A stretch of DNA of 64,000 nt from Mantamonas sphyraenae STR306. Its lineage: Eukaryota > Protista > CRuMs. The notes beneath the pieces are model-generated. The model saw only the letters and a program-made list of their open reading frames with translations, had not been told where the DNA came from and did no database searches. A program made the position numbers and the translations under genes. Shown piece after piece: positions 36,838 through 64,000 of this stretch (position 1 is the stretch's first letter; every line of letters begins with the position of its first letter). Location of the stretch: assembly GCA_026936335.1 (NCBI GenBank), contig JAPMXV010000057.1, positions 62,001 through 126,000 of the forward strand, given 5' to 3'.

Positions 36838-39564
36838 ATGAGGCGAACCATTCTCATCGCTACCATTCTGGCCATTGCCGCTCTTGTGGCGGCTGACTTC
36901 CAAGGCGACGTGTATGTTTTTCCTCTGCGTGTGTTACCCTTGTTTTTTTTGCCGCACGCCGGAAATCGTTCCGCACGCAAACGCTCGCGCGGCCTCCGCG
37001 CGTTTCTTCCTGCCGCCCGTACGCGCTCGCTCGCAATGCAGGACGCCCAGCACACACGTAGATGCCCAACACCTGCGCGTGTGCATGTGGGCGTGTGGTG
37101 CAGCCCTGCTCTGCGCGTCCAGATGACGCTGCACGCTTGCGCATTGGGTTCGGATGGAAGTGGGAGAAAAAAAAGCCCTCCCGCCCCAAACCCGGTCTCC
37201 GGTCCCATACGCCAAGGGAAGCACAGCACTGACACCCTCTCGCACACCAACACATTGGCCATCCTCGGTCCTGTCCCTCCTGCATCATTGCCACAGGCTC
37301 AACGCAGCTGAGGACGCGTACGTTTGGAGTGTGTGTGTGTGTGGTTGTGATTGTTGTTTCCTCGTTTGCCCTTTCTCGTCACGTTGTCTCTCGTGCTGAC
37401 AGCCACTTGTCGTACACACAGCGTCCGCGAGGCTGTGAACCAGGCCATGATTCAGCAGGCAGCTGCTGAGCATGGTGTGGATGTGCAGAGCAGCGCTAGC
37501 AGCGACAGCAGCGACGAGGAGTACGACGAGCTTCAGGATTCTGACTCGGACTCGCTTTCTCTGCCGCGTCGCTTTGACTCGGAGGTGATTGTGCGTCGCC
37601 GCGGTGGCATGACTGTGCAGTGCCTGGTGCCGCCGTGCCCCAAGATCGAGGACCCGCGCGTGCGTGTGGTCAAGCCTGTGCGCCGCAGCGATGTGCGCAA
37701 GTTCCCGGTGCTCCGCCCGGGGTACATCCGCCGTCACTACCGCCTGCCTGGCGTGCGCCGCCATGCTGGCATCCGCCACGCACGTCTGTCTGAGCTGTTC
37801 CGCCGCTTCAAGGGCCGCTACGGCGGTGTGCGCAAGGGCCCCATCGGCGTGCGCGTGGTCCGCTGTGGCTTCCGCCCGCGCCCGCAGATCCGTCTGCCCA
37901 GGCCCGTTGTGGACCGACCCCAGGTCATGGTGCGCCCGCCTGTGGCCAACGGCGTTGCCTCGAGCGACGAGAGCGCCAGCGAGGAGAGCAGCGAGGAGGA
38001 GTGGTCGGACAACGACGACGTGACCGACGAGAACGCCCTGAGCTTTGGTCGCTTCTGCAACAAGGCCTGCCCCAAGGTCAAGGTGTCCTGCACCAACGGC
38101 ATCCTGATGCGTGAGCGCACCCTGCGCAACGGCTGCAAGATCTGCGCCCGCTGCATCCCCAAGCGCAAGCCCAGGAAGTGCAACTGCAAGGCCATCAAGT
38201 GCGCCCCGGGCTACGAGCTCGGATACCCTGCCCGTGGCATCCGCCCCGCCGTCATGCCCTTCCGCCGCTCCCGCTTCGGTGTGCGCGACGAGGACAGCAA
38301 CCACAACGCCCTGCGTTTCGCCAGCCACTGGTGCCCGCCGTGCAAGACTTGCATCAAGAAGGGACAGAACTGGGGCATCAAGCCGCCCAAGCCCATCAAG
38401 CTCCCGTTTGCCTGCCCCATGTGCGCCATGCCCAGGTGCATGACTGGCTACAAGCTGGTCAGCGGCAAGAAGCTGTCCAACGGTTGCCACGCATGCCCCA
38501 CCTGCGTGAAGGACCCGACGGCCAAGCCGTTCCCCCACCCGTTCCCGTGCCTGCCCCGCGCTTGCCCCATGGTGATCCGCATGTGCAAGGCTGACGAGGA
38601 GTGGAAGGCCGGCACCGACAGCCGTGGCTGCACCACGTGCCCGTCGTGCCAGCCCAAGGACAAGCCGACGAAGCCTGTGGACCCGACCCCGGTGACCCCC
38701 AAGCCCAAGCCGTTCCCGTTCACCCGCTGCCCCATGGTGTGCTGCATGATGCGCATGCCCCTGAAGGGCTGCCCTGAGGGCAAGAAGTGGGGACCCACCT
38801 TCATCACGATCCGTGGCCAGAAGTGCCGCGGCTGCAACTCGTGCATCGACGCCAAGGAGGCCGAGAAGGACGCCAAGGAGGTCGCCGACGCCGAGGCTGC
38901 CACCATTGCCGAGGTCAAGGAGATCATGCAGGACGTTGCATCGTCCTCCGACTCGGACGACGAGCTGTTCAACTCGGATGACGACGACGTGTACGACGAC
39001 GACGAGCGCTCCATGCGCCGCCGCTGGAGCACGCGCCCTTCCATGTACAAGCCGTGGAAGCCGTACCGCTTCGACTGCCCCATCTACCGCTGCATGCGCC
39101 CGATGTGCAAGAAGGGTGAGGACCTCGTGCCCACCGTGATTGTGCGCAACGGCAAGCGCTGCCGTGGCTGCCCCAGGTGCAAGCCCGAGAAGGACATCAA
39201 GATCCGCGTGCGCCCGTGCCCCATCCCCATGTGCGCCTACCGTGGCAACTGCCCGGCTGGCTACAAGCTGACCCCGAACCACTTTGTGGCCAACGGTCGC
39301 AAGTGCCCGGGTTGCCCCACCTGCCAGAAGGTCGAGGTGTCTGAGGGACCCAAGTGCCCGCTGCGCTTCTGCCCCGCCGTCGCCTGCCCGCGCTCCCTGA
39401 GCACGGTCAGCAAGGACGCCAACGGATGCCCCGAGTGCCCGCGCTGCAACTGGCCGGGCCGCCCTCTGGTCGCCGTCCTGCCCGCCGAATCCTCGTCCGT
39501 CAGCGACGCCGAGGAGGCCGACGATGTCGAGGACATGAACATCTACGAGGAGCAGCAGGAATAA
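36838..39564 (+). CDS. Secreted Cys/Pro/Arg-rich modular protein with antistasin-like C-x5-6-C...NGCxxCPxC repeats
   Basis: Signal-peptide exon MRRTILIATILAIAALVAA at 36838, micro-exon(s) near 37296-37317, then a large exon from ~37422 with about 8 CxxCxxC repeats and acidic S/D/E spacers; strong C/G-ending codon bias. Confidence 0.7.
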
Positions 39565-40799: not shown

Positions 40800-40882
40800 G
40801 GCTTGCGGGCGGGGAGGGGGGGGGAATGGGGACAGTGTGGGGGCGGTGGCGGCGTCCGTGTAAGCAACACATCGGCACACAC

Positions 40883-42395
40883 ATGAGCACGGGAGGCATC
40901 TTTGGAGGTGACGACGACACAGATGTGATCAAGCTGGGCATTCTGGGACAAACGTCGGTGGGCAAGACGTCCATCTGTGTGCAGTACACCACACGGCAGT
41001 TTGAGACGCGGCACCTGAGCACCAACCTGCAGCAGGAGTACTTTTGCAGGGCTCAGTTTGACGAGGTGGGTTGCAGCTGTCCAATGCACACACATCACAG
41101 GCACTGCATACCAGCACGCAACACATGGGTGTGGTGCTGGTGATGCATACAAACCGCCTTGGATGCCCAACAGGGCGTTTTCCGCAGGGGTGGAGGGTCA
41201 GGGAAATGCCTGTGGGGGCTGCACGAGAACAACAACGGGCGAGGATGGGCTCACACGGGAGGCAAACACACACATACACACACACAACAGGGGCCTCTGA
41301 AGGGAAGGGACATCCTGGTGGAGATTGTGGACAACGCAGGACTGGACACAGCGGACATGGTGACGCAGAAGATGGGCGAGCTGGTGTTTGAGGTGGACGA
41401 ACGCGAAAGCCGCAACAAGAACAAGAAGAAGGAGAAGAAGCCCGAGTTTAGTCGCAAGGAGATCGAAGACGCCAAAGAGTATCTGTTGAAGGAACGGGCG
41501 GGGATAGAGGAGGAGAGCACAGAGGAGGGCACGGAGGCAAAGGAGGAATCCATGTTCTCCTCCTGGTTTGGTGGCGACGCAGAGGAGGAGGAGGACGACC
41601 AGGTGCGTCTGGACAGTGGTCTCAACGGACCCAAGGAACGAAGTCTGCGTAGCATTGCCGAGGGTGAGTGAGAGGGCCGGGTGTGGGGTGTGGGGGATGG
41701 GGGGAAGAGAGAGGGGGGATGAGGGACACCACGCACACCGTCCCTGTCGCACACTGGCACACACACACACACTGACACACACACACACACACATGCAGCT
41801 GAGTTGCGAAAGGAAGAGGCGGTGGAGGATGAAGACGTGTCGCATCTGCCTGCAGAGAGCACAGTGGATGTTCTGGTGAACGAGGAGAACATGACCACAG
41901 GCTACTCGGGCTTCATGGTTGTGTACGACTTTGGCAACAAGCATTCATACGAAATGGCCAAGAAGATCATCAATGCCATCAACACAAAGTGCGTGCTGGC
42001 GTGTGGGAGATGGAGGGAGGGTTTGGGGGGGGGCGGAAGAGAACTCAAACCAATGGCAACTCACACAAACACCACCCCACCACCACCACCACCACCACCC
42101 CACACCCTACAGGATGCAATACACAGATGACGCAGAAAAGGGCTGGCGCCCCAAGGTGGGCATTCTGCTGGTGGGCAACAAGCAGGAGCTGCGATCGGGT
42201 GAACGCGAGGTGGACCGCACGCCAGAGGGCTTTGCCAACAAGTTTGCACACGTGGAACACTTCACCTGTTCTGCAAAGATGAACAAGAACATTACGGCGG
42301 CATTCACTCGACTCATCGAACTCAGCGACGAACTCACAAACAACTGGGCCCCGTCGGGTCCCCAGGAAGACGACGAGGGCTGTGTGGTGCAATAA
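40883..42395 (+). CDS. Atypical Ras-superfamily small GTPase with large insertion and CaaX (exons ~40883-41065, 41291-41663, ~41817-41988, 42113-42395)
   Basis: G1 GQTSVGKT, G3 DNAGL, GFMVVYD, G4 VGNKQE, G5 CSAK and C-terminal CVVQ*. Confidence 0.8.
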
Positions 42396-42459
42396 AATTC
42401 CTGTTTGCAAAACAGCGCGCGTTCAAGCGATGATCACGTCAGACCCACGGCATCATGTC

Positions 42460-42647
42460 CACCCCCAATTGCAACAATGTTCGTTCACCCACAGTGTGTT
42501 CTTGTGTGAGTAGCTCGTCTTGCGCGTGGGAGGGGGTTGCAAACTCACATACGAATGTTTCCGGACAAATCTGCTTAGTGCCGGATTGAATTGTGTGACG
42601 AGTCCCTTGACACACACGAATGCGCAGGGACTCCGTCACACACACGC
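42460..42647 (-). ncRNA. Candidate Fanzor omega RNA scaffold (boundaries uncertain)
   Basis: Non-coding region directly downstream of the RuvC gene stop, with consecutive inverted repeats at 42592-42607/42626-42642 (16 bp with a 1-nt bulge), 42560-42564/42581-42585 and 42505-42511/42543-42549. The position matches where TnpB/Fanzor guides lie. Confidence 0.5.
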
Positions 42648-45600
42648 TCACGTACATGGCTGCAAGTGGGCCGGCCGTGCGCCGATGAGCGAATAGAGCA
42701 GACCAACAGTGCCAATCTGCAAGGCCCCATTCACATCACGATCAACACAACGTCGACGGTATTCGGTGGTTGGGTTGATTGCGCTGATGAGCGATAAGCT
42801 GGCGCCAATGGCTGTGGTTCGGGTTCCAAGGGAGCGAGACCGGTCGCACTCACAGCGTTTGAGGCGGCCGTGCGGGCTGTTGGAGCCCAAGTCTGGCGCA
42901 TACGTCGTTTCAGCACCACACACATGGTGAGTCTTGGAGGTGTTGTACTCATTCACCCGAACCACCATTGAGGATCTGGAGATGAACTCGATGGCTGATT
43001 TGAACCCACCCGAGGATCCAGTCCATGTCACACTGCCCACAATGTACAATACTGTTCGTGCAGCTTGTTCTTTGCGAGGTTTTGCCACGTTTGCCATCAT
43101 CTGCTGCGTCTGTGCGTGTTTGCCGGTGCGATGCACCTTGGCCACGGCTCCCGTCGGGTCTGCACCGCCCGCAGCATGACGCTCTACACTGTGTGCATGG
43201 TCGTCAATCTTTCTTGCGTGGTGTGGGAGCGTTGGCACTTTCCACCATCGCCCAATCGTTTCGGAGCCATGTTGGACGTCGTTTGCCAGCTCGACGCACA
43301 CAACGTTGGTGGCGTACGAGCCGGGGTCGATGAAGCACAGGCGCAGCCTGCGCAGAAGAGCGAGTGTCTCGCTGTACTGTGGTGGGGAAGTCGGATGGCG
43401 CAGCCGTTGAGAGTGGAGGTCACCTCGGCACAGCTCCCCGTAACTGCTCAATCCAATGCCACTCTTCACAATGGAACTGATGAGTCGCTCACCCAGTATG
43501 TCCTGAACTCGTCTTCTTCCAAACAGGCGACAAAGCCGGCAAATAGCGATCAGTTTGTCCCGTGGTTCTTCACTCTGCAGCGACTTCAGGAGCGGTTGTG
43601 CGTATGCCAGAGAGCGATGATGAGGCGATAGAAGCTCCAGCAAAGAGAAAGTGGCCTCCTGCCGCTGGGTTCCACGCGGCCACGTGGTGCGCAGAGTGGC
43701 AAGCGTTGACGGCACGTTCCAGGTTTGGCACTTCAGGATCTTGCCACACACGACGAGGGTGCCCGTCATGCGAGCCAGTGTGCGCAGAGACAGGTTGGCG
43801 ACGCGAGGGCATGCCAACATTGCCAGTGCCGGTGACCTCGCCTGCCGTGCATTCCGTAGTTGTTCGTCGGTGATTTCGTCGCCCAACAGAGTGTGCTTCG
43901 CGTACGCTTGCAGGTGACTCTGAACGCGTACGTGCTCCTCCGTATCCCCGCCCCATGCCCAGTCGTGCACTTGTGTGTTGACATACTCAATTTCGTCGCC
44001 ACGATCGATGTGCAGGCTGGGAGGAAGTTGCAGCAAGCCCATGCTGAACATCATCTTCAACGTGGTGGGAGTGAGACAAACATCGGGTGACAGGCTGCGG
44101 GGCTTTTGAGGCACGCCCACACCACGTCCAGAGACATGTGCTGCAGCAAGCGCGACCCAATCCGCGGATGTGGGTTCTCCGCTCTCTCGGCCGAAAAAGA
44201 CGTCTGCGTTGCACATCCCAGCCGCATCCAAGGCTTCAAGCAGGTCGTCGGTTGCCTCCTTGTACACTGTGTCGTCGTCACCGTGTTTCTTCGGTCCAAA
44301 GGCGACGTTGAGGGCGGCGAGGCGGGCAGCAACGGCGACCGGGCCCTCGTCCAGTTTCTCGGCGATCGCCTCCACTGCTGTGTCACGTGGTAGTGCGTCG
44401 AAGTGGGGCTGCAGCTTCGCCAGAGTGTTGGCCAGCTGGAACCTCGTCAACAATCCTTTCCACTCTCCGTGCAGTTTCTTCGAGCTCTCCTCCAGTGGAT
44501 CTGTTGTCGCCGTCCACAGCGTCCTCCACATGTTTCGATTGTTGCGAGCTGGCAGGAGGTCCAGATCATCCAGATCCAGGAGCACCGTAGCGTGATCATG
44601 CTCAGACAGGTCTGCCACGAGGTGGATGTGGTTGAAGACCAGCTCGTCCTGGAACCAAGTGTTGCCACTGCGGTCCCCACTCAGTACGACGAAGCGTTGT
44701 TGGTCTTCTGCATCGCGTACGAGGTTCCTCAGAGACCGCAGCCACGACAGAAGCTGTTTCTGCGAGTGAAAGAAGGCAGTATCGGCCGGCGAAGGGCCAC
44801 TGAACCTGCTGTTGCTGCTGCTGCTGCTGCTGCTGGCAACAACATCATATCCGTCTTCCTCCATCTCGTCCTCTTCGTCGTCCTCTTCGTAGTCCTCGCT
44901 GGAGCAGCTGCCGGAGTCAGAGGAGTCTGATTCGGAAAAATCATCACTGCACATTCCCTCGTCCTCATGCTCTGTGGCGACACGCTGCCGCTTGTCCATC
45001 GACGACGTAGTCTGTATGCTCCGACGGCGCTTCTTGTTGTCTTGAAGCGTGTCTTCCTCGTCGCTCCACTCGTGGTCCTGTTGATCAGCAGCATCAACAT
45101 GTCCGCGAGGCCCACCAGCACTGCTGTGTGAGCGGAGGCTCATGCCGTGGTGTTCTTCCTGGGATAGAGCTCCAATGCTGTCGATCGCACACACCAAGGT
45201 CGCGGTGGCAGCCCGTTCGAGACCTGCCACGGCCTGGCCGACTTGGAACATGGCATGTTCGCTGGCTTTGTCACCTGCGTGTGGACCAGCGAGTGTGACA
45301 GTGTGCTTGCGGTCATTTTTAAACACACCGTACGCAGTCGTCTTGGCGGTAGGTCCCAGCGTGTGCTCCACAAGCTCCTTGGTGGCCCGCTCCACGTCGT
45401 GCTGCGCCAGCGGCGTGATTTCAGCCAACGTAGCTGTCACCTTGGTGGCCTTCTTCTCCAGTTTCTTCTCGTAGTCCCGGGCGTGCTTGTCACGTTGCTG
45501 CTTTTCTTTGCTCTGGGCCTCCCTCTCCTTCTCCGTTGAGACATACTTGCGCCGAACCATCGTGTCGTGCAGCGACTCCGCCACTGAGCATGCCACCCCG

Positions 45601-47947
45601 CGGACAAAGCAGTCTGCACCCAGCCTGACAAAGGTACACAGGTAGAGCGAACCCACATCCGCCTGGTCTGTGTGCACCTCGACACGCACGTGCTCCTTCA
45701 CCGCGCGCAGCAGCGATGAGCACTCGATCTCGCGCAACACCAAGGCGGCAGTGCGGATGTCGTCAGGGTGCCCAAGCAGTACTTGGGACGCGCTGTCCTG
45801 TGCATCTTCCGTGCCCGTGCCAAATACCATCGTGTCCGCTTGGCTGATGAACGGGTCACGCTGCGCATCTTGAACAATTTGCGCATCTTCGTCGACACTG
45901 GATGTGGCGCTGGATGTGGCGCTGGAGCTGGCGCTGTCCTCTGTGTCCATAGCATCGGTGTGGTCCTTGCTGTCGTTCTCGGCGTCTGTGAACGCCTGGT
46001 AGAGTGGATGTTCCGTGGCTGATTCCAGATCATGGATCTTGACGTTGATTTTCTCTCGTGCATTGCGTTTGCCTTTGCCTTTGCCCTTGCTCTTGCCTTT
46101 GCCTTTGCCCTTGCTCTTGCCTTTGCCCTTGCCTTTGCCCTTGCTCTTGCTCTTGCTCTTGCGTTTTCGGCCCGGTTGCGTAAGTGTGATTGTTTCGAGC
46201 ACCTCACCGCTGGCCAGACCTCCATCGTGGAACAGTACGTGTGCTCCCGCCTCGACCTCGTCGTTGCGAACGATGTATGCTTGCGCCGTGCCGTCGACGG
46301 CCACGTACAGCGTGTATCCGACAGTCGCCGTGGACACCCTGGTGCACAGCTGCTGCAGCTCCTCCAGCCCGATGGTGGCGCCAAAGCACACGCGGTCATG
46401 GATCAGACTCTCCAGCGTCCTGCTGGGCATGCCCATACTGTTCACGGCCGTCCACAATCCATCCAAGTCATCGGCGAGCGAGCTTTCCTCAGGATCGCCG
46501 ATCTCCTCCAAATTCTCCAAACCGCTCTGCTGGCGCGCCAGCTCATAACGAGTACCGTAAAGCTGCCAGTCTTCATCAGATGCGTCAGCCACGTGCTCGT
46601 CAAGCCAGGTGAACGTTCCGGGGTTCCGTGTTGATGCCAAGCGGACGAAAAATTCCTTCGGGTTGTTGCCACACGCTTGCCCGGAGAGATCCATGTCGCT
46701 CGAGACTGCCGCGTGCGCAAGCGGCAGTGGAAGCCGCAGATAGGTGGTGGATATGTCGCCACGGCCAGCGAGAACGGCCGCGGCGGCGGTTGTGTGCCGG
46801 ATTTCGGGATCCACAGATGTGACGATTGCGTTCACTGGGTCGACGATGTGCAGTGTGCTCTCCACAAGCGGAGCACAGAAGTAAAAGTCAGAGTCTTGGG
46901 CAATCACGACGAACGCATCCACCTGCTGCTTGTCGATGTTCGTGGCAAAGGTCTCCGTGATGGTTGCATCAGCACTCGTACCTTTGTGTCCGATCACCGT
47001 GACCCGCTTGTCCTTGGCGAAGTGTCTGGCCACAACCCCGTGAAGCACGGTGTATGCCTCGTCCTTGGATCTGGGGCGCTGTTGGGAAGTGTGAGTCAGT
47101 GCCATGCAGCTGGTGAACTCGTCGGATGCACGCCGTGAGAGGGTTTTTTTTGCGTGCCCCTCCAGGAAACCAACCTCCTTCGCCCCGGCGAGTGTGGCGT
47201 TTACCATGGACTTGACGTTGTACAGCAGATGTGACGCTTGTTTTGGGTCCGCACTATTGAACAGCGCGCCGTGACGATCAATGTGTAGCGAGAAGACGCA
47301 GCGTTCCACGATGGAGCCGATGGTATCCACAAGCGCACGCAGACGGAGGGCCAGCGACTCGCACTTTTGCTCAAAGTCAGTGTCACTCGCTTGCTTGCCT
47401 GTACTGAACAGTCTGTACTTGTAGTCTGTGTTGTGTACCGAGTCAGGAGGGACGAGAGGGCAAGGATTTTGCGGGGCATCCAGCATGTGTGTCAATCACA
47501 GAGGCCGCGGCAGTAGCTTACAGAGATAACCAACGTCAACAGCCACATGCAAAGGACACTCGTCGTGCTTCTGGTTGGCAGCAGTCTGTACGTAAACCTG
47601 CCACACATGCTCCACACACATGGCAACGCGTTTGTCCACGTCCAAATCCTCGGCTTCTTCCTGTGCCTTCCAGACACTGCTCTGTCGCATGACGTGATTG
47701 CGCAGGGGGACCTTGCCTTGGATGTGCCTCTTGCGTAGGTAACTTCGCTCCCATTCCTCTCCGATGTCGGCTTTCTCGGGGTCAAGGATGGTGACGTCGA
47801 TCACGGCAAAGACACTATTGAAAATGTGCGCGGTGTCGTCCAGCAGAGTGGCACTGGCCACATGTGGCTTGTGGAGCAAAGAGCGAACAGCAGACTGGCC
47901 CATGTCCCTTTGTGCCTTGCTCAGAGGAGAGCCAGCAGTGATGCCGC

Positions 47948-47994
<47 letters not shown>

Positions 47995-47996
47995 AT
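42648..47996 (-). CDS. Fanzor1 (eukaryotic TnpB-derived RuvC nuclease) with N-terminal FEN1/XPG-like PIN domain; exon 1 47522-47996, intron 47426-47521, exon 2 42648-47425 (~1,750 aa)
   Basis: RuvC-I FIDPG (43320-43328), YIVG in place of the canonical E strand, relocated E in VVRVNEYNTSKTHHVCG (42948-42950), RLKRC, RuvC-III DRDVNGALQI (42729-42743) and terminal GARPAHL. The N-terminus has HVAVDVGYL|YYKY, LHID, GTSADATI, VIAQDSDF and AVLAGRGD. The intron GTAAGC...CTGAC...CACAG joins the two ORFs in frame. Confidence 0.85.
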
Positions 47997-48833
47997 TGTT
48001 CTTGACCAGCGTGCGCAAACAGACATAGCCGAGCACATGCACGAGGTGTATGTTGCAGATACGAGCATCTGACTGCAACGCAACGTCCACCCGGGTGTGC
48101 GTGCCCCTGGTGCCTTTTTTGCAGAGTCTCACCAGCATGCCAATTTCGTGGCGCAATCAGCCGATGTTCTCCTCACCAGCTACGCATGTGCCACTGTGAA
48201 GACAGGTTGGCGATGCTGGACATAGCCACACTTTCCTGTGGTGCTGCGGAGGATGTGCGCCAAAAGGCTGCATGGGCCGCACCCATTCCTCACACTCGTC
48301 CACTCGTCCAGGGTCACAACGAACGACTTGCCTGAAACAGCAAGGCACAACGCCTGCCGTAGTCTGTGTCCCATCAGGTGCTTCCAATGTGTCGACGAAT
48401 TGGCCAAGCAAGGGTCGCCTTGCTCTGTGCCCATGCAATCACGTGCAAGATGACGCTGCACGACAACCGGCTCGGTGAATCCATGTCGTATGCGCAGTAG
48501 GTGCACGCCGAATGGGCCACGGAGGCTACAACCTGGCCTAGGACGCCCGACGCTTGGCCGTTTGGGCACTGCCTCAACCTACTCCGCAGACCCAACACAC
48601 TGAAGAAGCGAAAATCCTTGACAACCTCATCATCGCGTCTGTTCATTCGTAACACTCCTTTCAAGTGCACATCTCTGCACGTGTTCCAACGCCCCACCCC
48701 CCGCCGTTCTCAACCGAAGTACAACGAATCTCGAATCTCAATCTCACTTTGCACGCGGAGTTTGCTGGCGGCGGAGCACCCCTCTGCAATCATGGGCCCA
48801 CTAAGACCTCACTCAAGGTGAGTACGGATTTTT

Positions 48834-49901
48834 CTAACACCCCATGCAGAGTGTGCTGCAGCCAGTCCACCGAAGATCATCACATCCTGTACCCACAGTT
48901 GCGTCCCACGCTCGCACATCGCGATTCGTAGTCATTCGCAGACAGTGCTCGATGGCAAATGGTGTGCACACGTCGACTCGTGCGTAATGCCGCCTGAGCA
49001 TGGCCTTGAGCTTGCTGAACATAAATTCGATTGGATTCAAATGTGGGCTGTACGCGGGCAAGAACTCGACACGCACGCCAAACAATGCACACAGTGTAAG
49101 TACTTCACTTCCCTTGTGGATGCTACAGTTGTCCATCACCAGCATGCGCATGCCCTGTGCTTGCATCCGTGGAAGCAGTTTGAAGCGCAGAAAGTGCACA
49201 AAGTCACGACGTGAGTACGATCCGGTGAGCATGTCGAATGCCACAATGCCATTTCGAGCCCTTGCATTGATAGCTGCCAACAGAGAGATCCGTGACTGGC
49301 GTGCTTGCAAGGCGTGGACAACGGCGTCACAGCCGGCCCGTGCTCGGCCGTACCGTCTCCAGCAAGTGCGATTCTGCACTGCGCTCTCGTCCAGAAACAC
49401 AATGTTGGCCATTGTCATGTCGATGTCGTGCCGCATCAGTCGCTCAAACTCCTGGCGTCGACGACGCACGTGTGCAAGGCTGCGCTCGCGTGGGACAACT
49501 GCACACTGCTTGCGCGTCCATTTCATGCGCTTGAGGGCACGAAAGATGGTTGAAAGAGATGCATGCACATGGCGCTGTTGGAACAGACGGCTCTGCAGCT
49601 CATCGAGGAACAGAGTGCAGTCCACGCGAAGCTCATCCTTCAGGAATGCATCATCAGCTGCTGCAAGCAGTCTTGGACGCCCTCCAGATCTGGGCAAAGG
49701 TGCCACGTGGTTCAGCCGCTGCAGCTGCTTGACATACTTGCGTACCGTGCTGGCTGCAACTTTCCAAATTCGAGCCGTTGCTGCAGCGGAGCGTCCGCTC
49801 TGAATGTGGTCGTCCACCATACGTTGACGCAGTTCCAGTGGAAAGGGATGACCAGGTGTGAACACCCCACCAAGTGAATTCACTTTGGTTTGAACCGGCA
49901 T
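48834..49901 (-). CDS. IS630-Tc1-mariner superfamily DD34E transposase with paired-box-like N-terminal HTH
   Basis: HTH SAAATARIWKVAASTVRKY, GGRPRLL linker, VFLDES (D1), VMDNCSIHK (D2) and FLPAYSPHLNPIE (E); 34 residues between D2 and E. Confidence 0.92.
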   Translation of the reverse strand: MPVQTKVNSLGGVFTPGHPFPLELRQRMVDDHIQSGRSAAATARIWKVAASTVRKYVKQLQRLNHVAPLPRSGGRPRLLAAADDAFLKDELRVDCTLFLDELQSRLFQQRHVHASLSTIFRALKRMKWTRKQCAVVPRERSLAHVRRRRQEFERLMRHDIDMTMANIVFLDESAVQNRTCWRRYGRARAGCDAVVHALQARQSRISLLAAINARARNGIVAFDMLTGSYSRRDFVHFLRFKLLPRMQAQGMRMLVMDNCSIHKGSEVLTLCALFGVRVEFLPAYSPHLNPIEFMFSKLKAMLRRHYARVDVCTPFAIEHCLRMTTNRDVRAWDATVGTGCDDLRWTGCSTLCMGC

Positions 49902-50000
49902 TGTCGTTGTGCAATCGTTTGATTTTCTCGTCGAGCGGAGACGTGTGGAAACACCAAGAACAAAGAAAAGCATGGGTGTGTGGACAGTGAACGTAGCTTG

Positions 50001-50057
50001 TTATATCATGGTGTCCCGTGTTTATGTCATGGTGTCCATCACCGTCCAGGGTGGACC
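50001..50057. repeat. Tandem 16-nt direct repeat TTAT(A/G)TCATGGTGTCC (50001-50016, 50022-50037) plus GTCCA-ggg-TGGAC inverted repeat (50045-50057)
   Basis: Read directly from the sequence, ~100 nt upstream of the transposase ATG; repeat period is 21 nt. Confidence 0.7.
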
Positions 50058-50386
50058 ACCTCTACGCGTGCCAAATCGGAGAGAGCAAAGCTGATTGAAG
50101 AAGATATCGCCATGTGGAACATGCACAGTATGGAATACGACCAAAAAATTGCATTTGAGCTGGAATTAAACGAGCTGGGGTGCATACCAGGGCGTTGCAC
50201 GAAAGAGTCGCTCAATTGAAAACGCCTGAACCAGACCCACTCAGCATGTGTACGAAATCAGTTCCATTTGCAAACGAGCCATGGGTAGGTGTTGTTGTCC
50301 CATGTGTTTTGGTGTGTGATGTTGGGAAGAGGGCGGGTCGCGGTTGATCACCGTCACGCGTGGTTCTTCCAGGCTTCGTGAACAGG

Positions 50387-50632
50387 TCAGCTGCTCCAAA
50401 AGTCCAGGCGCCCTGTCTTGCTGTAGTGGTTGTAGACCATCCAACACAGCCAGGTGATGGCCAGCAACAACTGCAACCGCTTCATGGAGGCTTTGCGCTC
50501 GGCGACGGAACGAGCAAACTCCCGCCTCTGCAGGCGCTCCAACTCCTCCGGGGTCGGGGGGGCATCCTTCTGTACATTCTCGTTGGTGTTGGTGGACGCT
50601 TTGTTGCCTCTGCGTCGCCCTTGTTTGGCCAT
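50387..50632 (-). CDS. Small single-pass membrane protein
   Basis: MAKQGRRRG..ELERLQRREFARS followed by hydrophobic LLLAITWLCWMVY. Confidence 0.5.
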   Translation of the reverse strand: MAKQGRRRGNKASTNTNENVQKDAPPTPEELERLQRREFARSVAERKASMKRLQLLLAITWLCWMVYNHYSKTGRLDFWSS

Positions 50633-50705
50633 GGATGCGTGTGTTGGGCTGCGCACCTGAGCGCACAGGAGCTACGCGCACCCGCATCCATCTCGATGAG
50701 GCTGC

Positions 50706-52040
50706 ATGTCCAGCCGCAAACACAAGTACATGACCCGATTGGCCAAGGCCACCCATGGTGTGTGGGACGACGCAGGCACACGCGACAATGTCACACAGTC
50801 TGCAGACACCGGCAACGAGCCACACGGCTCCATGAAACGTCCGCGTCCAGAGGAAAACGAGGTGTCTGACGATCCGCTCGAAATGGGTGACGAAGATCCT
50901 GAGGAGGTGCACGTCGTGCCTCTTCGCCATCGCTCGACCCTGAGCGTGCCGGAGCTCACAGATCTCTTTCTGGGGCTGGAGACACATCCGATGCTGTCGT
51001 CCACGACATGGAATACGCTACATGCAGATTATGACGACGGCTTTGTGTTTGCGGAAGCGTTTGCGCCGGAACGCAAGAGGGTGGGTGCGAGTCAGGATTC
51101 TTCCTCGTCCGCAGCGCCCGATCCCACGTTGCAAAGCATGGCACAGTTCGAAAACGTGTACAGCAGTGTGTTGCATTCCCAGGTGCCCTCCATCACATCG
51201 CTTCTGGCCAGCACCGACCATAACTATGGTGGACGGGAGATGCCGATGGCCAGGCAGGGCACGGTACAGCCACATGAAGGGGTGCAACACACAAACACGC
51301 CTGTCCGTAGCCTGCTTCATGCAGTTGAAAGGCCACACACGATCGCTGGTCTCGAGAGAGACGAAGATGGACGCATGGTATTGCCTCGGAAGCCGTGTGA
51401 GACGCTGGACTACTGCTCGTGTTGTCACTCGTCCAAGAAGGTCACCCTCCTGTGCCTGGCAGGTCTTGTGTTGTATCCCCATTTGAGCGTGGTGGTGGAC
51501 AGCTGGGGCACGTGTGCCAACGTGACGGACATGTGTCGGGTGGAGGTCTTGGACGACCATGTTTACATGAGTATGCACAAAGGCCAGTTGGAGCTCGTGG
51601 GGGGATTCGTACGCCAACAGAGTCGTATGTACGTGATTGGGTTTGATGCAAAGAGCAAAAAGGCCAGCAAGCGGCACTGGAGGCTGAGAAAGCGCAGGAA
51701 GCGGTTCTACGACGACGACGACGACGACGACGACCAGGACCAGGATACAGAGGCCAAGAGGGAAATGGAAAGGGCCTCGGATACGATGCATCGAACCATG
51801 AGGCGACTGCGGGACGACAACACCGGGTTTGATTACGATGGCTCGTCAGAACACACCTCCATCGATCTGGAAAACCTGGCCAGAGCACTCGACCACACAG
51901 GGTGGCCTGAGCGAGCGGCCCTGATACGTGAAGTGGCAACAGAGATGCTTGCGCTCCGAGACGTGGTGGATGAGCAAGAAAGGGGAGAAAGTGACAAAGA
52001 CGAATCTGAAGACAGCGAATCGGAAGATGAGGCTGCGTGA
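50706..52040 (+). CDS. Uncharacterised intronless protein (444 aa) with C-x5-C-x-CCH cluster and basic NLS-like stretch
   Basis: Long ATG-initiated ORF containing PCETLDYCSCCH and KKASKRHWRLRKRRKR plus acidic tracts. Confidence 0.6.
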   Translation: MSSRKHKYMTRLAKATHGVWDDAGTRDNVTQSADTGNEPHGSMKRPRPEENEVSDDPLEMGDEDPEEVHVVPLRHRSTLSVPELTDLFLGLETHPMLSSTTWNTLHADYDDGFVFAEAFAPERKRVGASQDSSSSAAPDPTLQSMAQFENVYSSVLHSQVPSITSLLASTDHNYGGREMPMARQGTVQPHEGVQHTNTPVRSLLHAVERPHTIAGLERDEDGRMVLPRKPCETLDYCSCCHSSKKVTLLCLAGLVLYPHLSVVVDSWGTCANVTDMCRVEVLDDHVYMSMHKGQLELVGGFVRQQSRMYVIGFDAKSKKASKRHWRLRKRRKRFYDDDDDDDDQDQDTEAKREMERASDTMHRTMRRLRDDNTGFDYDGSSEHTSIDLENLARALDHTGWPERAALIREVATEMLALRDVVDEQERGESDKDESEDSESEDEAA

Positions 52041-61700: not shown

Positions 61701-64000
61701 CCTGCGTGGCCCTCTGCTGTGCCACGAGTTGTGCACGCAGCTCCTGCACGTGTTGCCTCTGTGTCACGTTGTCCTTCTCCAGCTCGGTCAGCCTGTTGCT
61801 CTTCTCCGCATCCAACACCTCCCAATTGCGTGCCTGAGTGCGCATCTGCTCCTGCAACGCCGCATACTCTGCCATGCTTGCCTCGTGCTCCTTCTGTTGG
61901 CTGTCCAGGATGCGTTTGATTTCCCGTTCCATCTCACCCGTGCGTTCCCGTGCCCCGTCCAGCTCACCGCGAAGACGCGCCACCTCCTGGTCCTGTTCGT
62001 ATGCACCGCGTTCCATCAGTTCCATCTGCGTGTTGACACGCTCCATGTGCCGTTCTGCCTCCGCCATGCGCTCTCCATGCGCCTTGTCCTGTGCCAGTTT
62101 CTCTTCGCTCAGCTCGTTGAAATTGTTGCCCAGCTCGATGTGGTCTGCCCACAGCTCGTCGTACTGTTGCTGCAGCTTCTCCACACGCAGCTGCAGCTTG
62201 CGTCGCTCCTCCATGAGGTCTGCCGTCTGTGCACTGTGTCGTCCCATCATTCCACCCATCAGCAGCACGCTGTCGTTGTTCTCCTCCTTTGGCGTGTGTG
62301 CCTCTGCCTGTCTGTGCCTCGGCGTGTCACCACCACTGTGACTGCCGCCTTCGACGTTCCCTCCTGCCTCTCCCGCCTCGCTGGCTGTCTTGCGCCTCAG
62401 GCGCTGCTCCAGCTGCTGCTTCTCACGCTGTGCACGCTGCAGCTTACCCTCGAGCTGCTTCCGTCGCTCCTGTTCACTGGCAAGGGTCTTTTGCACACGG
62501 CGAAGCTCCTTGGAGGCGTCACTGCCCTCTTCTGCCGCACGTGCTTCCAGGCTATTGATCTGCACGCTCATCTCCTGGATCAGCGTCTGCCTGCGTGCCA
62601 CCTCCTCGGCCAGGTGCTTGCGGTCGGCCTGCAGGGCGCTAAACTGGCTCTGCAGTGTGCTCAGCTGCGCGTGAACGGTGTTAAACTCGTTGTGCACCCT
62701 CTCCAACTCCTCCTGCTTGCCCTCCAGCTCGCGTGCGTGCCTTTCCTCCACACTGGCTTGCTGACTCTTGAGCAACTGCAGCTGCCGTTCCATTTCAAAC
62801 AGTTCGTTGTTGTAGCTGAGTTCCGTCTGGTTCAACGCCGTGTGTGCCTCGGCTCGCAGATCCGACAACTGTGCATCGCGCTCCTGCGCCGTAAACTGCA
62901 GCTGCTCCTCCATCTCTGAGATTTCCATTTCGCAGGACAGCACGTGTCGCTTGGCGGCGGCAATTTCCGCATCGGCATTGATTTGCAACGCCGCGAGTTG
63001 TGTCTGCAGCGCACCTTGCTCGCCACGCAGACGTCCGTTCTCCTTGCGCAGTCGCTCCACGTCTGCCAGCAGCACATTCACACTGCTGCCATCAGACGCA
63101 AACACTTCGTTGCGTGCAGGCAGCGACACCTTGAGACCACGCAGACACTCCAGTCGGAGATCGTAGGCACGCTTCTGGGCGTTGCTTGCTTCCACCAGGA
63201 ACGTCATCTGTTGCAACAGTTTGCTGTGTTCGTCCTCCTCAACGTCGTTGTCGTTGTCGTTGTCGTGGTCGTTGTCGTTGTCATCGTCCTCCTCGCGCTC
63301 GCGTCGTGCCACTGTGATGTTCTTCAACGCCAACAAGTCTTCCAGATGCGTCTGGTAGTTGTTGGCATGTTGCGACTGTGCCCTCTGCATGGCCTGCAGC
63401 TCCGCGTTGGCCTGTTCCAGCTTGGCTTCCAGGTCGCGGTTCAGCATGATCCAATGCTCGTGCGAGTTGCCCGCGTGCAACTGTTCCTCGTAACCTTCCA
63501 CCTGCAGCTGCAGCTCCTGGTTCACCCGTTCCGACTCTGCAGCATGTTCCAACAGCACCTGCATGTGATTCTCCGCCATCTGGTGCTGCGACTCTAGGTA
63601 CATAAACATGTTGTCCAGGATTCGCCTGTGTTCCTGTGCCTGTCGTGCGGCCGCCTCGCTGGGAACGATGGATACGGGTACATTGCGTGTCAGTCGGTCG
63701 TCGGTGGCAGTGGGGAGTGGCAGGTGCGCGGGTGGTTGGGCAGGTTGCACCCCGCACAACACTCGACTCTCTTGTACACTCACATGGCGGCTGCGTTGTG
63801 GTTGCCATCAACGCCGTGTGTGCCGTCTGCTGCGCCCACAGGGACGAGCTGGTCCTCATCGTCGTCATCGTCGTTGTTATTGGCACCGTGTTGGCCTTGT
63901 CGAGTGCCGTGCTGCTGTTGCGGCCTGCTCTGTTGGTCTCCATCTGCAGAGGCGCTTGTCAGCTGCAAGAGCTGAACTTGACATTCTTTCAGCTCTGCGT
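58764..64000 (-). CDS. Very long coiled-coil protein (centrosomal/golgin/myosin-tail-like; 5'-partial; apparent 1-nt frameshift near 60480)
   Basis: E/Q/R/L heptad-rich ORFs 60433-63783 and 58764-60623 join as AEAQG|QLQRLENEL if one base of a GGGG/CC run is removed. Confidence 0.7.

Follow-up and report, generated by a model that had tools for sequence, protein, structure and literature searches.

Fanzors are known as compact single-nuclease effectors. Fanzor1 proteins have about 500-800 amino acids (aa; PMC10711439), and some are encoded in Tc1/mariner transposons, i.e., PGv-1, PUl-1 and PUl-4 (Bao and Jurka 2013, PMC3627910). There, the Fanzor lies downstream of a mariner-like transposase in an element with terminal inverted repeats and a TA duplication. 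PGv-1 and the PUl families have Fanzor-only derivative families, and PGv-1 encodes a second nuclease, GIY-YIG, as a separate gene (PMC3627910). IS630-linked TnpBs of giant viruses (DDE-6 branch, PMC10691335) also combine an IS630-family transposase with symmetrical ends. The same organisation was found in the diploid CRuMs protist Mantamonas sphyraenae (PMC10492846), strain STR306. The analysed window is a stretch of 64,000 nucleotides, positions 62,001 to 126,000 of contig JAPMXV010000057.1 (forward strand), and is numbered here from its first letter. It contains a 7,831-bp element of the IS630/Tc1-mariner type (42398..50228, minus strand) with a transposase gene and, downstream in the same orientation, a PIN-Fanzor gene. 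As in the PGv-1 and PUl families, copies without a transposase exist. Two features differ. The predicted protein of 1,718 aa is more than twice the reported Fanzor1 size, and a FEN-like 5′ nuclease lies within the same polypeptide. No such fusion has been described for the giant-virus TnpBs (PMC10691335), ApmFz2 or PpFz. The preferred reading, with a probability of about 0.5, is a Tc1/IS630 transposon family with a Fanzor homing nuclease fused to a 5′ nuclease that may resect the cut.

The architecture of one gene for a Fanzor RuvC and a FEN-like PIN nuclease is virtually certain. A stop-free frame of 1,615 codons runs from 47495 to 42651 on the minus strand, the strand of all features of this gene given below, and a second frame just upstream ends in VAVD. 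At the local composition, the 1,476 codons of exon 3 would stay stop-free by chance with P of about 2e-23, which rules out a chance open reading frame (ORF). Twenty loci with flanks were compared, setting aside six distant loci, transposase-only elements and the XRN and FEN genes of the host. In the 18 intact copies, a single exon encodes the complete RuvC together with half of the PIN active site. This single frame rules out two separate genes, and the fusion proposed in the initial annotation is borne out across a deep family.

Splicing was predicted from the 20 copies, and homology searches were run exon by exon. Predicted exon 1 (47522..47996) encodes an N-terminal extension and the first PIN strand with the catalytic Asp (47535-47537). 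Predicted intron 1 (47426..47521; 96 nt, phase 1) contains an in-frame stop. Its GT donor is found in phase 1, six codons past the first PIN Asp, in 20/20 copies, and the acceptor follows after 53-276 nt. Predicted exon 2 (47175..47425) provides the second PIN strand with Asp 47277-47279 and a conserved Lys (47241-47243). Predicted intron 2 (47079..47174; 96 nt, phase 0) lies upstream of a P-x-x-K motif. It has a weak donor, GTTGGT, and is in frame in the window copy; in 10 other copies, the intron at this position shifts the frame or introduces a stop. Three exons would yield 1,718 aa, and retention of intron 2 would yield 1,750 aa. The shorter product is likelier because the position of intron 2 breaks the frame in the 10 other copies. 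The giant size in the initial annotation thus stands; its figure of about 1,750 aa had counted the in-frame intron 2 (47174-47079) as coding. Exon 3 (42648..47078) is a single frame for the second half of the 5′ nuclease, a middle region, REC-like helices, RuvC and zinc finger. A Lys-rich repeat (46060..46170) is a candidate nuclear localisation signal by its sequence. The weakly conserved middle region (44784..46059) gave no credible Pfam match and ends in an acidic, Ser-rich linker. Pfam matches to EBNA2, SR-25 and similar families were dismissed as low-complexity noise.

The N-terminal fold was modelled on the paralogue L033, which is 33% identical to the window protein, in its natural frame through both introns. 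The mean predicted local distance difference test (pLDDT) was 62, with 70-90 in the core, and the predicted template modelling score was 0.62. Intron-encoded parts had a low pLDDT (<50 at the intron 1 stretch), an independent fit to the intron calls. The model confirmed a predicted FEN-like PIN 5′ nuclease fold comprising the PIN core, the arch region and the helix-turn-helix extension of the superfamily. In a comparison with 48,161 solved chains, the 17 best-scoring structures were all FEN-like 5′ nucleases (Z 7.1-11.0), including Exo1 (Z 11.0, root-mean-square deviation (rmsd) 4.5, 254 aligned residues), XRN1 (8.8), T4 RNase H (8.4), XPG (8.0) and FEN1 (8.0). The first 27 Foldseek rows were FEN-like 5′ nucleases too, and so were the viral models. 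Fold and order of the acids are shared with Exo1, FEN1, XPG, GEN1, T5 FEN, T4 RNase H, the 5′ domain of Pol I and XRN; the identity to these enzymes is only 8-13%, and most copies have Ser for one active-site Glu.

The PIN motifs of the initial annotation are present in the order given there: VAVD (47535-47546), LHID (47277-47288), GTSADATI (46959-46982), QDSDF (46884-46898) and LAGRGD (46755-46772). The C-terminal half of the domain (46500..47078) has S-A-D at 46968-46976, D-S-D at 46887-46895 and the helix-turn-helix Asp at 46755-46757. Conservation in the 20 copies is complete for the first-strand Asp, the Lys, A-[DE], D-S-D and the helix-turn-helix Asp (20/20 each), and the second-strand Asp is present in 18/20. 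The residue preceding A-[DE] varies: 12 copies, the window copy among them, have Ser, one has Pro and seven have Glu. The reported change from E to S in the EAD motif is present in the window copy, and seven paralogues still have the Glu. By motif-level assignment, the window copy has six of the seven metal-ligand acids of the superfamily, the seventh being changed from Glu to Ser. These substitutions, together with the two copies that have an altered second-strand Asp, would fit a PIN domain with little or no nuclease activity that has been retained to bind branched or nicked nucleic acid and so hold the break or a repair intermediate. Against this stands the invariance of D-S-D, the first-strand Asp and the helix-turn-helix Asp in copies that are only 15-35% identical. 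Such invariance of metal ligands appears typical of working active sites, and a pure binding role is improbable.

The methods split on the subfamily. Profile-profile alignment with hhalign gave 82-88% with phage exonucleases of the T4-RNase-H/T5 type (E 3e-6 to 1e-5), 5-12% with FEN1/XPG and 0.3% with 107 viral XRNs; the reference families were motif-selected from public contigs and reach 30-73% against each other, so these values are a lean and no proof. Across structural comparisons, Exo1 had Z 11-12 and T5 FEN Z 9.6-9.9, and Exo1 was 2-3 Z units above XRN. Other results favour XRN. Clusters of giant-virus XRN_N were closest by language-model features (0.92), and the best Atlas structure was a viral XRN with a template modelling score of 0.52 (residues 10-457), versus 0.34-0.39 for other 5′ nucleases. 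Xrn2 was the sole Foldseek match with E <0.001, and XRN structures superpose on about 300 residues, helices past the core included. The term 'FEN1/XPG-type' in the initial annotation is hence valid at the superfamily level only, because the phage-type profile outscores FEN1/XPG proper and two other methods favour XRN. No Pfam family matched the PIN part at its cut-off; the best was 5_3_exonuc_N in one copy (E 0.0044). Pfam XPG had no match, and genome scans with the XPG_I and XRN_N profiles listed none of these loci; EAEQ or EAEE occurs in seven paralogues only. The host has its own XRN genes elsewhere, namely four (C42, C23, C38 and C15; many eukaryotes have two), as well as five XPG-family genes.

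The XRN resemblance would suit a Fanzor homing element whose fused 5′ nuclease acts on RNA. It might mature the guide by trimming the long read-through transcript from 5′ to 3′ up to the bound scaffold, or clear the RNA of the R-loop once the target is cut. Enzymes of the T4-RNase-H type also remove RNA from hybrids, which counts for a role on RNA as well. The profile score with viral XRNs and the higher Z of Exo1 speak against it, and other Fanzors produce their RNA without such a domain. Action on RNA is rated as unlikely, though it is the main rival. For resection of DNA, the preferred reading, count the best structural scores, which belong to DNA 5′ nucleases, and the best profile, which is a phage 5′-3′ exonuclease family.

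The C-terminus is confirmed as a Fanzor-type RuvC with a zinc finger (42663..43340). All motifs of the initial annotation are in place, i.e., FIDPG (43320-43334), YIVG (43035-43046), VNEYNTSK (42933-42956), DRDVNG (42726-42743) and GARP..L (42663-42683). The triad of the DPG Asp (43326-43328), the relocated Glu (42948-42950) and the last Asp (42735-42737) is intact, as had been claimed. These acids and three zinc-finger cysteines are invariant (19 copies). RuvC-I reads DPG in 13/20 copies, FIDPG in the window, and DGG or DTG in seven. The RuvC-II Glu is replaced in the window (YIVG), and the zinc finger follows as E-YNTSKT-H-x-x-C, compared with C-x-x-C in several paralogues. The Fanzor signature is a DPG and a Glu six residues ahead of the zinc finger (PMC10711439), and the window RuvC matches it in both. 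The spacing also fits the Fanzor pattern D-X(125-275)-[TS][TS]-XX-zinc finger-X(5-50)-RD: 120-131 residues from Asp to Glu, TS after it, and 35 residues from the last Cys to RD. In the window copy, His takes the place of the first zinc ligand.

The last 711 residues of the window protein were modelled with a pLDDT of 72 and take the shape of a RuvC of the TnpB/Cas12 family, in line with the initial annotation. The Fanzor1 protein PpFz was first in Foldseek (E 5.7e-4), with a loose overall superposition, and Cas12j was first in VIA among RuvC proteins (Z 10.6). The closest Atlas clusters (0.97) are giant-virus and eukaryote proteins of 620-800 aa with the TnpB zinc-finger family. A profile of the C-terminus weakly matched the mimivirus Fanzor2, ApmFz2 (E 0.0011), and Pfam gave only a sub-threshold match to the TnpB zinc finger (E 4e-5). 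Large protein searches found no sequence relative at E 0.001. In the fold model, a mostly helical region (43340..44783) stands where a Fanzor would have REC/WED; the Foldseek alignment to PpFz covers it at an rmsd of about 26, too loose for an assignment. REC2 consists of two short helices, partly of low confidence, and the conserved TDG motif of the Fanzor1 WED was not found. Because this motif is absent, the protein is placed among the Fanzors without a choice between Fanzor1 and Fanzor2. The short RuvC spacing and the weak ApmFz2 match might point to Fanzor2; the element around the gene belongs to IS630/Tc1 and not to IS607.

The C-terminal 250 residues match 27 genomic loci with 24-99% identity, and the open frames have nearly all 1,200-2,250 codons. 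A RuvC profile detected about 45 loci, and a profile of the N-terminus matched the same genes at about 25 of them. The 20 compared copies form at least seven subfamilies. PIN and RuvC trees have matching subfamilies. Over 11 pairs, the ratio of nonsynonymous to synonymous substitutions stayed below 1 throughout, ranging from 0.05 to 0.48 in the PIN core and from 0.03 to 0.30 in RuvC. By these sequence comparisons, both domains are under purifying selection and the fusion is old and maintained. A domesticated host gene was ruled out by the mobile ends and differing flanks. No relatives outside the genome were found in a set of 5.8 billion (similar-length proteins sharing 5-mers) or, for the PIN part, in a set of 1.84 billion, both with few protist genomes; viral, metagenome and prokaryotic contigs, likewise poor in protist genomes, also gave none.

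Several family members deviate. At least 12 more distant frames of 1,700-2,000 codons (C7, C12, C51, C63, C70, C10, C44, C75 and C52) match only the RuvC-II/zinc-finger part. In the subfamily of L033 (3422-5452) and L034, the middle region is longer by about 400 residues, which are rich in beta-strand-like sequence and have no Pfam match. L040 (C35:263104-273103) is internally deleted to 3.5 kb with intact ends and a TG duplication; it has lost the 5′ nuclease and kept a RuvC frame of 1,175 codons. L035 (C68:190608-200607) is split into three frames, with a tandem duplication in the 3′ region and no defined end. The distant members L022 and L027 have long low-complexity tails (Gly/Ser or Glu/Val) past the RuvC-III motif.

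The PIN-Fanzor gene is cargo of an IS630/Tc1 transposon family, a point absent from the initial annotation. Copies of the element on C2 and C11 are 96-97% identical, and the similarity ends sharply at 50228 and 42398. The left terminal repeat (50209..50228) is imperfect, matches the right end in register at 11/20 positions and has the motif that opens six other subfamilies. The right repeat (42398..42417) is common to a transposase-less sister subfamily (L030-L032). The ends of every subfamily form imperfect inverted repeats, some 20-30 bp long, and a 2-bp duplication flanks 15/20 copies, namely TA in 12, TT in two including the window, and TG in one. Both are the IS630/Tc1-mariner signature. 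In the window, the left copy of the duplication is 50229..50230 (TT on the minus strand, where most other copies have TA), and the right copy, from junction comparison, is 42396..42397. A retro-type element was ruled out, as introns are retained and 2-bp duplications predominate.

The DD34E transposase of the IS630/Tc1 type (48834..49901, minus strand, 355 aa) matches Pfam DDE_3 (E 1.3e-25) and HTH_Tnp_IS630 (E 8.7e-5). Only five of the 20 copies have a transposase. Two copies on C44 combine the same transposase (95% identical DNA) with a PIN-Fanzor of only 39% identity. In two subfamilies, the left 300 bp correspond, in reverse complement, to the right end of a third. Modules and orientations have thus been exchanged. 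A 1-nt difference in the window transposase (48834-48900) turns the last five residues into 20 others; three other copies have 340 aa. The C11 copy (L029:7572-8750) has a frameshift near the N-terminus, by decay or assembly error. A second group of about 13 IS630/Tc1 transposases is 46% identical (C11:189621, C43:172590, C46:163155, C59:146193, C68:288710, C44:17512 and others). Distant giant RuvC frames (C11:182458, C46:153010, C10:93674, C51:269758) are found 5-10 kb from some of them, which suggests further composite subfamilies.

The right end is a candidate source of the guide RNA. In 20/20 copies, 109-259 nt separate the stop codon from the right end. In four subfamilies, this stretch is far more structured than shuffled sequences (z -1.8 to -8.2) and is predicted to form a long stem including the terminal repeat; 2/36 pairs are compensated in one subfamily. 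A stem using the terminal repeat has also been described for Fanzor RNAs. In the window, the candidate omega-RNA scaffold (42396..42650, minus strand) has a 55-nt hairpin past the stop codon and an 8-bp terminal stem with the right repeat. Rfam gave no match for it. By analogy with Fanzor reRNAs (right-element RNAs; PMC10711439), the predicted guide segment lies beyond the right end (42381..42395, minus strand) and differs in every copy. It is antisense to the end of the gene left of the element. Together, the sequences are at most suggestive of a structured omega-RNA at the right end.

The junctions provide a possible trace of cutting. In five of the 20 copies, the left junction repeats the start of the right flank, over 6, 9, 9, 12 and 21 bases and with 0-2 mismatches; the same was seen in 0/380 mismatched flank pairs. 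Two of the five have lost 42 and 74 bp of the left end, with the right ends in place. The mirror image was not seen among the 20 copies, given five cases, loci collected via the 3′ part and junctions set by eye. The duplicated right flank is exactly the stretch that the right-end RNA would use as guide. Such one-sided duplications fit a cut-and-copy-back repair. The empty site would be cut some bases past the TA, and its right-hand end would copy the element from the occupied allele. Joining of the new strand to the untrimmed left-hand end would leave the right-flank duplication at the left junction. The duplications are thus a possible footprint of Fanzor cutting in vivo.

RNA-guided cutting is highly probable. 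Without RNA guidance, the protein would combine a junction resolvase and a 5′ nuclease in a structure-specific enzyme of two domains that aids repair after transposition. The best Cas12 match exceeded Holliday-junction resolvases by no more than 2 Z units, the REC/WED region had no confident superposition on any Fanzor and the 3′ region of the window copy is not significantly structured. This explanation is nevertheless very improbable, given the Fanzor fingerprint with the zinc finger, the first ranks of Fanzor-like proteins in Foldseek and Atlas, the constant position of the gene close to the right end and the strong hairpins in four subfamilies.

In the pathway inferred for the Fanzor homing element with a resecting 5′ nuclease, the gene would be spliced and both domains would be catalytic. 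Insertion into a 2-bp site, in most cases TA, would be the task of the transposase, in cis here and in trans for most subfamilies. Transcription across the right end would supply the omega-RNA, whose final ~15 nt would be copied from the flank. The RuvC half would then cut element-free sites, left by excision or present as the empty allele in the diploid, 5-20 nt past the TA. Known Fanzors cut 9-21 nt from their target-adjacent motif (PMC10432273), and homing is established for bacterial TnpB (review PMC13565253). The tethered 5′ nuclease, acting on DNA, would shorten the 5′ strands or remove 5′ flaps at the break. Exposed 3′ tails would favour repair by copying of the occupied allele. A single-chain RNA-guided cut-and-resect enzyme, by which about 45 mostly transposase-less elements persist and spread by homing in a diploid protist, is put tentatively at slightly below even odds. 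Cleaning of mariner excision footprints by the 5′ nuclease was rejected, since these footprints are 3′ overhangs.

Several points weigh against the preferred reading. The language-model clusters and the best Atlas structure are viral XRNs, and the fold comes from a paralogue of 33% identity, not from the window protein. Nuclease activity may suffer from the Glu-to-Ser change and from the lack of an obvious second gateway Arg. The whole right-end region of the window copy has a z of only -0.8 to -0.9 (own subfamily -0.3 to -1.3), and scaffolds are unalignable between subfamilies. An engineered T5-exonuclease fusion lowered the editing by SpuFz1 (PMC13434818). Long duplications need no fused domain; the CRe Fanzor elements of Chlamydomonas are alike without a reported second nuclease (PMC3627910), so that the duplications speak for guided cutting and not for the fused domain.

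On one side, the element directly follows the stop of a plus-strand ORF (41919-42395); on the other, the stop of a convergent minus-strand ORF (50241-50987) is 10 bp away. The empty site is thus a very short gap between two gene ends (42393-42397, 50229-50243). Directly left of the element, 40880-42395 (plus strand) is a spliced small-GTPase-like gene with GQTSVGKT and NKQE motifs and a long acidic insertion. Further left, a 737-aa ORF (37351-39564, plus strand) has a signal-peptide-like start and repeated Cys-rich basic units with acidic spacers.

No paper on a Fanzor or TnpB fused to a 5′ nuclease (XPG, PIN, XRN or flap endonuclease) was found in the literature searched, which left most subscription literature and Repbase outside its scope. 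Within these limits, the natural fusion, which agrees with the sequence and fold features of Fanzors, appears to be new. Some Academ transposons carry an XPG domain, on which the literature search gave nothing; the window element has no Academ transposase. In a group of compact effectors, an intact-looking 5′ nuclease kept through deep divergence points to events after the cut. Its two separable active sites make the homing hypothesis for eukaryotic Fanzors directly testable, and with at least seven diverged subfamilies whose ends differ, several independent orthologues are available for assays. The CRe-1, CRe-2 and CRe-3 Fanzor1 elements of Chlamydomonas share the intact 3′ ends, the truncated 5′ ends and duplications of 7-19 bp from the normal target motif (PMC3627910). 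They differ by Helitron2-type ends and the lack of a reported fused nuclease, and one-ended rolling-circle transposition was invoked by the authors (PMC3627910). The tethering of a 5′ exonuclease to an RNA-guided nuclease has a man-made parallel in T5 exonuclease engineered onto CRISPR and OMEGA effectors (PMC13434818). If the second domain steers repair to homologous copying or matures the guide, PIN-Fanzor would be the natural counterpart of these artificial exonuclease fusions.

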